Source: Neoechinorhynchus agilis (taxonomy: Eukaryota; Animalia; Acanthocephala). From it: a stretch of 64,000 bases of DNA. How positions within the stretch are numbered: the stretch's first letter is position 1; every line of letters begins with the position of its first letter. The DNA is taken from the NCBI GenBank assembly GCA_051530055.1, contig CM121341.1, positions 11,510,784-11,574,783 on the forward strand. Direction: 5' to 3'. The position numbers and the translations under genes are program-made. The notes below the pieces were generated by a model, which saw only the letters and a program-made list of their open reading frames with translations, ran no database searches and had not been told where the DNA came from. Positions 37,053-40,000 of the stretch are shown piece after piece.

Positions 37053-40000
37053 ATGAAAAGTTTTCGAAAGCGTTCACTCGAAGATTCTCCGGATTTCAAC
37101 GAATCAATCGACGCTGATTCTGAGCGACCTCTATATATTCCGCTTCGTAAGCGTGGAACTGAATACGTACGCCATTGAAACTGAGTGTATTTTATTGACT
37201 AATCAAAAAACGTTTACCTAGATTGAACGTATCCATCGAGCATTTGATTTAAATTATCGTTGTCGACCGGAAAAGTCAGTAGACAGGGCCGGCATTGATC
37301 CGGACGAGATTGAACGAGATATATCGCTGAGCTTACTTGATCAGCATGCCGAGTTGAGGCACGTGGAAAATGAAGACGAGCCAAGCAAACTTTTGAAGGA
37401 AGAAGAACGAATTCTTGAGACGGTCGTAGAAACTAAGGCTCTTTTATGCGTCGCTGAAGCAGCCAAGGGAATTTCTTATACTAAATCGCTGAAAACAAGT
37501 TGGAGTATACCTCAAATTTTATTACCTCTTCTCACGGATGCTCGTGTTTCCAAAATCCGAAACGTATTTAACATCCAAGTAACTCATGGAATCCGATTTT
37601 GAGAGTTTCTTTTTTTTGATTTCATGATGTAGATGGAGATGATATTCCTCCACCTTTACTCAAATTCGCTCATATGCTTCTTCCTAATGCGTTAATAAAA
37701 GCTCTTGAACTCAATGGAATCAACTCTCCGACTCCAATACAAATGCAAGGTCTTCCCATTGCTCTTTGTGGTAGAGATTTGATCGGAATCGCGCATACTG
37801 GGTCAGGGAAAACCCTCGTTTTCGTCGTTCCGGCTATAATGTTCTGTCTGGAGCAAGAGGCATCTATGCGATTTTCCAAAAGTGAAGGTCCCTACGCTCT
37901 GGTCATATGCCCTTCTCGAGAGTTGGCTAGGCAGACATTTGGTATTTTTGACGGACTATGCAAAGCGATTGCACGAGATGGACTTCCACGTCTTAGATGC
38001 TGCCTTTGTTTGGGAGGAATGCCATTACGGTACTGGCTCTTATTTTAAAAGACACTTTACGAGCATAGTCAACTTACTTAAATTGCTAACGGTTACTCTT
38101 AAATTTTAAGATTTTTAAAGGTTTTTTGAGGGTTTTTACTGGCAAGCCGGGTTGTTTCATATTTTCATTAAATTTTAGTTTGCCCCTTCTTTTCCAGCTT
38201 ATTTTTAGACATAGTGATATAACTACATAGTCTTTAATGCACGGTAAAAAATTTGAACATTCCGCCGGATTCTCAGATACATCCCTAGGAGAAAGGACCC
38301 ATCCGTGAGTTTCCTCCCTTCAGCGGTATTTCGTCTCCTTTGGTTGTGCGTCATTGGTGGTACCGGATTCGAATCAGTTGACCCTTAACTTGGATCAATG
38401 ACATTAGTCCACTTAACATTAGAACCAAACATGAAGCCTCCTAAAATACTCAACCGGTCGGTCTTATTAAATGGAGAATTCGCTCATTCTATTCGAAGCA
38501 AATGTCCCCTCCTGGAGGTATCTGAGAATCCGGAGGAATGTACAAACTCTTAACCGTGCATTACAGACTATGCGGTTATATCACTTCTCTGATGTAATTG
38601 GTTTGGCTTTATGCCTTAAAAAATAAGCCGGGTATAAGGGACAAACTAAAATTATGTAATGTTACGCTTAACAAAAAGTATTCTTAGTCATCCAGTTTCG
38701 AAAGGATAAACAAAACTGATAAAATATGGTGAAGAAAATAAGAAGTGAGAAATTCGATTTTATTGTGAATTTCTCAGTTCTTATTTTCTTCACCATATTT
38801 TATCAGCAATGTTAAATATATATTCGATAAACAAAACTGTAGCTTTAAAGAGTCGGTGCGATAAGAGAGCAGTCTGAGGCATTACGGAGTGGCGCTCACA
38901 TTGTGGTTGCCACTCCAGGAAGACTTATTGATATGCTCGACAAAGGAATCGTTTGTCTTCGACTTTGTCGGTATTTGTGTTTAGACGAAGCTGATCGGAT
39001 GATCGATATGGGTTTCGAAGAAAACGTTCGGAATATAATTTCTCATTTTAAAGACCAAAGACAAACATTGTTGTTCTCAGCAACAATGCCGAAACAAATC
39101 CAAAGTTTCGCAAAAAACGCACTCGTCAAACCAGTAATTCTTAATATTGGCAGAGCAGGTGAGTTTCAAATGATGTGTGATTTTAAATTTTTATTTCAAA
39201 ATTCAAAGGTGCGGCGAGTTTGTCCGTCGTACAAGTAATCGAGCTAGTCGATTTGGAGAAGCGTGTGCCATATCTTTTGGATGTTCTCCAACGAACTCCT
39301 CCTCCCGTGAGTACCCCTTTCTATGAGATTGTAGTAATTGAAAACTTGGTATGATAAGGCGTTAATTTTTGCTGAAAAGAAGCAGGATGTGGATTCAATT
39401 CATGAATACCTTCTCATAAAAGGAGTTCGTGTTGTTGCGATTCATGGGAGTAAAGGTTCGGTTTAACTGCTAGCAGTTCGTAGCTGTAAACCAAGTTGTG
39501 GTTTTTAGATCAGGAGGAACGTTTTTGGGCTATTGAGAAATTCCGGAGTGGAGATAAAGATGTTTTGGTGGCGACCGATGTTGCTTCCAAAGGACTGGAT
39601 TTTCCAGGGATTGAACATGTTATCAATTTTGATATGCCGATCGATATTGAGACATACGGTAAGTATTAACTTTCTGTTTAAAAACTTTTAAAAATCCGAA
39701 CCAAGTTTTTTAAAACCTTAAATTTTAGTTCATCGTATTGGAAGGACTGGTAGATGTGGAAAGACCGGACTCGCAACAACGTACGTTCATCGAAATTGCG
39801 GTCAGTATAATTCAAGTACAAAATATCGTTTAACTCGTCTTCTTCGTTTTGAAAGAAGAAGCAATATTGCTGGATCTGAAACATTTATTGATGGAAGCCA
39901 AACAGATCGTGCCCCAGTTTCTGAAGGAATATTCTTCTGATCGAGAAAAATACTTGGAGATTGACGGATATTCCGGATGCGCGTACTGCGGTGGATTAGG

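Follow-up and report, generated by a model that had tools for sequence, protein, structure and literature searches.

A 47-nt palindromic insert with a duplicated GTA interrupts the DDX41 gene of the acanthocephalan Neoechinorhynchus agilis where GT-AG splicing does not restore the conserved protein

The DNA analyzed was a 64,000-nucleotide (nt) stretch of Neoechinorhynchus agilis (Acanthocephala; GenBank assembly GCA_051530055.1, contig CM121341.1, positions 11,510,784 to 11,574,783 of the forward strand), referred to below as the window, with positions counted from its first nucleotide. G+C makes up ~38% of the window, which is animal DNA whose introns are short, and N. agilis has been described as having a compact eoacanthocephalan genome of 46 Mb, a transcriptome G+C of 0.39 and 74 RNA-seq libraries (PMC12690905). 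A complete DDX41/abstrakt gene lies on the + strand at 37053–40103 (ATG at 37053, TGA at 40101–40103), with nine exons and 609 codons after removal of eight interruptions, a 50-nt piece included. Seven of these interruptions are ordinary in-frame GT-AG introns. The second interruption is the exception and is the subject of this analysis, which followed an initial annotation proposing that a 50-nt hairpin is excised there.

In the database the DDX41 model matched best to the DDX41 of the acanthocephalan Pomphorhynchus laevis (67% identity, E 2e-252), and DDX41/abstrakt of many animals came next at 55–62% identity; the matches carry PF00270 and PF00271 (DEAD, Helicase_C), and residues 145–402 of human DDX41 align gap-free with the model (structures 8c6j, 5h1y, 5gvr). 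The C-terminal CCHC zinc knuckle is also part of what identifies a DDX41, and the conserved C-terminus was read in the gene model. The remaining 1830 coding bases are indel-free, and the intactness of the rest of the gene (609 codons, seven in-frame GT-AG introns) argues against a decaying pseudogene. Use of TGA as a sense codon was ruled out, since DDX41 itself terminates at a TGA at the conserved C-terminus. No protein of the same species was found among 5.8 billion database proteins, and neither the 29-nt exact junction nor a relative above 61% identity was found in metagenome contigs.

At the second interruption, CAA (37576–37578) is followed by GTA (37579–37581), a 47-nt body (37582–37628), a second GTA (37629–37631) and, from 37632, GAT GGA. 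The duplicated GTA and the 10-bp stem joining the ends, both described in the initial annotation, were recovered, the stem pairing 37584–37593 with 37618–37627 in the RNA fold, one pair being G·U. The direct repeat is exactly 3 nt long, the bases next to its two copies not being the same (A/T before, A/G after). The features of the region, all on the + strand, are as follows.

37222..37578, + strand: exon 2, ending AAC ATC CAA (N I Q) and encoding the invariant R151 and I156
37579..37581, + strand: 5′ GTA copy, either the Val158 codon or the GT of a donor-like GTAACT
37582..37628, + strand: palindromic insert body, 47 nt, T-rich, in which the exon frame meets TGA at 37600–37602
37582..37593, + strand: 5′ arm of the hairpin, ACTCATGGAATC (RNA fold)
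37618..37630, + strand: 3′ arm of the hairpin, GATTTCATGA-T-GT, with U37628 bulged and one G·U (RNA fold)
37629..37631, + strand: 3′ GTA copy, the Val158 codon if the 5′ copy is removed
37632..38029, + strand: remainder of exon 3, with DGDDIPPP, the Q motif and Walker A, up to GGMPLR
37579..37632, + strand: canonical-looking GT-AG interval, 54 nt, whose removal causes a frameshift with two stops within 25 codons
37544..37632, + strand: sole in-frame GT-AG option, 89 nt, replacing 14 residues by H (donor score 2.8)

Codons start at 1 mod 3 upstream and at 0 mod 3 downstream, and the length removed must therefore be 2 mod 3. The DDX41 protein is restored only by removal of exactly 50 nt, 37579–37628 or the same length shifted by 1–3 nt; because GTA is duplicated, four such excisions are equivalent (termini GT..AT, TA..TG, AA..GT and AC..TA), and all four registers leave the frame open to the end of the exon. 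This removal would join AACATCCAA to GTAGATGGAGAT, giving a product that contains CAAGTAGATGG or, in its longer form, AACATCCAAGTAGATGGAGATGAT, and an insert-free (“empty”) DNA site would read ATCCAAGTAGATGGAG. Removal of the 54-nt GT-AG interval would instead join ATCCAA to ATGGAGATG (product AACATCCAAATGGAGATGAT) and shifts the frame, as had been annotated, with stops following, and the AGs at 37602–37605, previously noted as leading to a TGA at 37617, would give introns of 25–27 nt that do run into TGA at 37617–37619. When the other pairings of GT with AG were tried, just 37544–37632 was in frame, and it was rejected since it deletes invariant residues: its removal would join GATGCTC to ATGGAGATGAT (product ACGGATGCTCATGGAGATGAT), in agreement with the earlier statement that the alternative GT costs 13 residues. 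Two nested canonical introns were ruled out, 50 nt being too short for them when the smallest intron seen in the genome is 43 nt. The interruption thus does not combine the GT and AG ends of a U2-type intron with a preserved reading frame, nor does it resemble a U12-type intron, its 5′ end being GTAACTCA as against (A/G)TATCCTT and no TCCTTAAC-like branch motif being present in the insert.

The DDX41 model was aligned with 120 orthologues ranging from cnidarians to vertebrates (121 sequences in all). The 24 residues around the junction fill 24 columns with gaps in 0 of 121 sequences; R151 and G160 are present in 121/121, I156 in 120/121 and V158 in 114/121, every sequence has E or D at position 159, and the duplicated GTA supplies the Val codon needed at position 158. 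Removals of 53, 54 and 89 nt each break this pattern, and the segment that the 89-nt option deletes has a gap in none of the 120 orthologues. The 35 nt which that option would make intronic encode KIRNVFNIQ, where P. laevis has NIRRKLNIQ, and are therefore coding or were so until very recently. The alignment is strong support for CAA GTA GAT GGA as the probable true coding sequence. The corresponding exon is uninterrupted in P. laevis (locus L001, 15174–15290), Adineta steineri (L002) and Lingula (L003), and the interruption is therefore a lineage-specific gain rather than an old intron. A DDX41 exon that is intact and kept by selection has here received a lineage-specific 47-nt palindrome and a 3-nt GTA target duplication. 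The earlier claim that hairpin excision restores the protein is supported in part: a 50-nt removal does restore the coding sequence (120 gap-free orthologues, the Val column, three species intronless at the site), and the excision mechanism is a hypothesis, as the DNA would be no different if a palindrome had recently entered an allele that is damaged or hypomorphic.

An intron after RF(E/K), common to Pomphorhynchus, Adineta and Lingula (L001 15280–15345, L002, L003), is missing from the window DDX41 (37632–37680) and has been lost in this species; the new interruption sits ~42 nt upstream of that intron position. The deposited P. laevis DDX41 protein (P0001) is without 17 residues, GKTMVFVLPAIMQCLQQ, that include the end of Walker A and that the genome encodes contiguously (L001 15520–15580), and it looks as though the P. 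laevis annotation placed a false 51-nt GT-AG intron within an exon. The same annotation also carries a long, doubtful N-terminus.

The stem can be extended to 12 bp by the pairs A37582–U37630 and C37583–G37629, with U37628 bulged. The 54-mer has a minimum free energy of −13 kcal/mol, and the insert alone folds with z = −2.8 to −2.9, 1 in 200–300 shuffles being equally stable; a 76-nt piece including exon flanks folds unremarkably (z = −1.36). Terminal stems of at least 10 bp occur in ~0.2% (p ~0.002) of random 50–54-nt sequences of intron composition, and those of the seven canonical DDX41 introns measure 3–8 bp. For comparison, 23 canonical short introns were taken from DDX41 and from the genes for an SLC12 transporter, CTNNBL1, an RGK-like GTPase and a POLD3-like protein; their z values range from −2.0 to +1.6, with a median near +0.9. 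The 2 of 25 short interruptions that canonical splicing does not cleanly resolve are the two most structured (DDX41, z −2.8; CTNNBL1, z −2.9 to −5.2). In both stems the single non-Watson-Crick pair is a sense-strand G·U and not A·C, which fits pairing at the RNA level. The hairpin is tied to the anomaly well beyond chance, and this favors an insert-type origin over a sequence error; the association is silent on how, or whether, the insert is removed. Hairpins are 2–4 times more common in the window than in shuffled sequence (~3 times for those of at least 11 bp). In the RGK-like GTPase gene (− strand), a canonical 50-nt GT-AG intron at 19128–19177 contains a 12-bp internal hairpin at 19136–19173, and structured short introns therefore occur with normal borders too.

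Splice sites were scored with a profile built from 24 canonical introns of the window, a small training set. The donor of the 54-nt interval scores 2.7 (canonical donors 2.5–10.1, median 7.5) and its acceptor 0.9 (canonical acceptors 3.8–10.1, median 6.7), and the 37628 end scores −3.9 as an acceptor. The splice-site context of the interval is unlike that of other introns of the same genome, its GT and AG scoring no better than, or below, the weakest of the 24 canonical sites, and by the standard of this genome it therefore makes a poor intron. GT-AG borders are found in all 24 of the other introns examined; the introns read in the SLC12 gene (at least 14), the rest of those in DDX41 and two in CTNNBL1 are of the plain GT-AG type and measure 43–113 nt, bar one of 836 nt.

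A possible second insert of the same kind lies in the CTNNBL1 gene (+ strand, ATG at 24860, extending to ~27085).

25035..25076, + strand: stem-loop of 42 nt, 13–15 bp with one G·U; z = −5.2 for 25031–25081

The first exon of this gene (MDVNELL...LDDTGI) and the next conserved block (RRMVNVLDKR) are in the same frame with two TGAs between them, both in the 3′ arm of the stem-loop, and the fixed spacing in homologues favors LDDTGI-RR-MV. Three in-frame canonical or near-canonical options exist: GC-AG at 25026–25073 (48 nt; donor −2.5, acceptor −1.4), GT-AG at 25051–25083 (33 nt; donor 0.6, acceptor 3.1) and a 102-nt GT-AG option that scores badly. No acanthocephalan CTNNBL1 orthologue was found in the homologue search. 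In the last intron of the gene, GT26397-AG26744 (348 nt) is one base out of frame, and removal of 347 nt (GT..CA or TG..AG, with a direct repeat AG) yields RLVELDNYKRY; the in-frame GT-AG pair 26397–26776 drops NYKRYHLVRK, where homology is weak. An 8–9-bp stem joins 26405–26413 with 26719–26727 in this intron. In the POLD3-like gene, a single in-frame TGA near 13651 with a 9-bp hairpin was considered as a further case and rejected, as an ordinary 60-nt GT-AG intron at 13611–13670 better fits the length of the human protein.

Searches of the window and of the P. laevis locus (L001) gave no second copy of the DDX41 insert or of its arms, and within this scope a repeated-element origin was rejected. 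The insert has terminal inverted repeats and a target-site duplication, as do MITEs (miniature inverted-repeat transposable elements); it is single-copy in the window and L001, and its 47 nt are well below usual MITE sizes. The window does contain a foldback/MITE-like element of ~160 bp with nested inverted repeats, in two copies ~70% alike, one upstream of CTNNBL1 (24540–24700) and one in an SLC12 intron (3500–3666), to which the DDX41 insert is unrelated. Snap-back templating from nearby was considered and rejected: the 5′ arm resembles 37709–37721 (ACTCAATGGAATC) with a score within the shuffle null. Generic scans for a direct repeat, a terminal stem and a merge of open reading frames (ORFs) returned hundreds of chance matches, from which no class could be defined. 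No known RNA families or tRNAs were found in the window.

Two known systems come close to the DDX41 insert in anatomy or in setting. The non-canonical introners of the dinoflagellate Amoebophrya (Farhat et al. 2021) have inverted repeats of 8–20 nt and direct repeats of 3–5 nt overlapping the exon borders (PMC7789003), dimensions that the 10-bp stem (12 bp with the bulge) and the GTA copies at both borders match; they are likewise short, lack GT-AG borders, have paired ends and an ambiguous cut site, and are laid out much like a transposon with target duplication (PMC7789003). They differ in forming multi-copy families, in making up a large share of the protist's introns and in having been confirmed by RNA-seq (PMC7789003), whereas in the present animal ~35 interruptions yielded one strong case and a possible second, the DDX41 insert being single-copy in the window and L001 and known from DNA alone. 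SOS splicing (Zhao et al. 2025) is a spliceosome-independent excision of inverted-repeat transposon inserts in C. elegans and human cells (PMC12779559). As would be the case here, it acts in an animal on an insert with paired inverted ends in a coding exon, uses non-GT-AG sites near the repeat ends and can restore function (PMC12779559). The substrates described, however, are Tc1/Tc3/Tc4/mariner elements, either full or with internal deletions, whose repeats measure ~54 nt, against a 47-nt insert with a 10–12-bp stem, and its excision is heterogeneous, often out of frame and restorative only in poorly conserved regions, whereas DDX41 would need to be cut exactly, and in a region that is conserved; the minimum repeat requirement is stated to be unknown (PMC12779559). 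The DDX41 insert does have the paired inverted repeats around an exon insert that mark an SOS substrate, with a stem far shorter than 54-nt repeats.

In the nonconventional introns of Euglena, the ends are brought together by a stem. These introns resemble the DDX41 insert in lacking GT-AG borders (PMC12501133, PMC11170887) and differ in being a very numerous feature of a protist lineage with sequence signatures of their own. Transposon-derived canonical introners (Micromonas, Aureococcus and others; reviewed in PMC11282704) are similarly short elements with terminal inverted repeats and a target duplication, the duplicated target supplying one splice site, as the GT of the 5′ GTA copy would in DDX41; they end in AG and are removed together with one duplication by normal splicing, whereas the DDX41 insert ends in AT and its nearest AG is 4 nt too far.

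The reading favored here, in which our confidence is somewhat less than even, is that the insert is removed from RNA by a structure-guided, non-GT-AG excision and that the gene stays functional. With the two GTA copies held side by side through the 10–12-bp stem, the stem-loop would be excised at the helix base or next to it and its flanks joined, so that the insert and one GTA copy (50 nt) would be gone from the transcript. Such removal would be analogous to that of the Amoebophrya hairpin introners or to animal SOS splicing (AKAP17A/CAAP1/RTCB). Excision from RNA is favored because the rest of the gene is intact, the surrounding residues are invariant and the canonical sites are weak; because the neighboring, conserved CTNNBL1 has a similar structured insert and both stems have their G·U on the sense strand; and because there are precedents for the anatomy and for non-spliceosomal excision in animals (PMC7789003, PMC12779559). 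Several points weigh against it. Its support comes from DNA sequence, inspection of ~35 interruptions across 64 kb gave one strong case, the window has no second copy of the element, and the CTNNBL1 case has the in-frame GC-AG and 33-nt GT-AG alternatives. SOS splicing is imprecise and was shown with 54-nt terminal repeats (PMC12779559), and the excision proposed here falls in a conserved region and would need to be exact. Frame-destroying splicing through the weak GT37579-AG37632 pair could still occur, and a heterozygous insertion allele would look identical in DNA. More doubtful, and put forward tentatively, is a wider proposal that Acanthocephala or a close relative carries a minor class of very short hairpin and direct-repeat interruptions of coding sequence that are removed exactly with GT-AG ignored, possibly by the SOS machinery working constitutively. 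Essential genes would depend on this removal, among them DDX41, whose product is a component of the spliceosome.

The alternative that carries a substantial, if minority, share of our belief is a damaged or hypomorphic allele, that is, a recent palindromic insertion (foldback/MITE-like or a repair product) in one haplotype, kept by the assembly. Splicing at GT37579-AG37632 would then give a null, or splicing at GT37544-AG37632 a protein minus 13 residues, with the other allele or the shortened protein functioning. Inverted ends and a 3-nt duplication have the look of a fresh insertion, foldback/MITE-like elements are present in the genome and hairpins are enriched relative to shuffled sequence, the in-frame GT-AG rescue (37544–37632) exists, and the window has one strong case. 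The crystallized human DDX41 DEAD domain (5gvr) begins at the residue aligned with the junction Val, and the deleted residues are therefore not needed for folding of that domain. DDX41 is nevertheless essential in the model animals studied; the deleted segment has residues invariant in 121 sequences and no natural gap; the insert is unrelated to the MITE family of the window and has no second copy there; and if inserts of this kind did harm, it would be an unlikely coincidence for the neighboring CTNNBL1 to carry another one that is structured and contains stops. An error of sequence or assembly, or a micro-deletion, in an ordinary intron is unlikely. It would require that 4 nt (GTAG) were lost at the donor of a 54-nt phase-1 intron, CAA GTA G/GTAACT...GATGTAG/AT GGA (slashes mark the borders), or alternatively that base 37628 is really G, making a 50-nt GT-AG intron. 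By reasoning, adding GTAG restores both a consensus-like AG/GTAA donor and the exact protein, 54 nt fits the usual intron size of 43–70 nt, and the last CTNNBL1 intron (26397–26744) is likewise one base from an in-frame GT-AG solution. This account would nonetheless make a coincidence of the end-to-end hairpin (p ~0.002), a second of a repeat that exactly mimics exon plus 50 nt, and a third of an acceptor that after repair is still far below canonical ones (0.9 against a minimum of 3.8); moreover, the other 1830 coding bases are without an indel, and an ATGAG/ acceptor (G at −3) is of a kind absent among the 24 canonical introns read.

Removal of the 50 nt by the spliceosome itself with GT-AT termini, the hairpin hiding the nearby AG and presenting an AT/GTA junction, is quite unlikely. 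Its 5′ end would be a usable if weak GT donor (2.7), U37630, A37631 and their neighbors can pair in the extended helix, and lineages rich in non-canonical spliceosomal introns, such as Fritillaria and other tunicates, are known (PMC13326754). Against this, 24/24 other introns are GT-AG and the 37628 end scores −3.9. Excision from DNA, in which a germline internal eliminated sequence (IES) would be removed precisely in somatic nuclei with the TA within the GTA repeats as boundary, is very improbable. The IESs of ciliates are short, TA-bounded, inverted-ended inserts that interrupt coding sequence, an anatomy with which the DNA is compatible; precise elimination of this type is not known in animals, no report of it in acanthocephalans was found in the literature searched, and the window contains nothing that speaks to it. 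Hardly credible is a translational bypass, in which the ribosome would hop from GTA 37579 to GTA 37629 over 50 nt retained in the mRNA. Hallmarks of bypassing known from phage T4 gene 60 and the mitochondrial bypassing elements (byps) of Magnusiomyces are shared by the locus, namely identical codons that would serve for take-off and landing, a ~50-nt gap (here exactly 50 nt) and a hairpin within it. Those cases come, however, from phage and mitochondria, keep the insert in the mRNA and have a stop directly after take-off, whereas in DDX41 the first in-frame stop is 7 codons past the would-be take-off codon (37600–37602); bypassing would also require that the pre-mRNA had not already been spliced at GT37579-AG37632; and the cytoplasmic ribosomes of animals are not known to bypass.

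If the exact junction were present in RNA, the excision favored above would be a natural, apparently tolerated and precise non-GT-AG, hairpin-guided removal from an essential animal gene, at a place where the protein is conserved. The known instances of SOS splicing are transposon alleles of laboratory origin, untranslated regions in two cases and an exon presumed to belong to a pseudogene, and precision was not seen (PMC12779559). Such excision would then be accurate enough to be relied upon, and the locus would provide a 50-nt natural substrate for working out cut-site rules. Genes of this sort would be split or missed by gene finders limited to canonical sites, a point relevant to the BUSCO scores of acanthocephalan genomes, which have been reported to be very low (PMC12690905). 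If the insert instead marks a null or hypomorphic allele, it amounts to an insertion polymorphism of the ordinary kind and a reason for care in annotation.

DDX41 intron 3 (836 nt) contains two inverted-repeat structures, probably inserted foldback elements.

38171–38653, in the + strand gene: inverted-repeat structure 1, with 72-nt arms (38213–38284 and 38514–38585) within 18-nt outer arms
38709–38813, in the + strand gene: inverted-repeat structure 2, a separate hairpin with 47-nt arms

Elsewhere in the window, 26001–30000 has a strong positive GC skew (0.22 to 0.38) and no tandem repeat was detected there. A repeat common to 27160–27400 and 54150–54400 (translated ...YLKEEAQV.DSCTLGISGF...) lies just past CTNNBL1 and overlaps the end of a LicD-family gene. 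Related ORF fragments at 8292–9675, 15011–15688 and 44343–44876 (...AAVSTRESGAWLN...LAASNIKFAT...) are probably remains of a Penelope-like or other retroelement, and beside them an ORF at 9059–9439 gives a weak GIY-YIG match (E 0.0025, below the Pfam cutoff).

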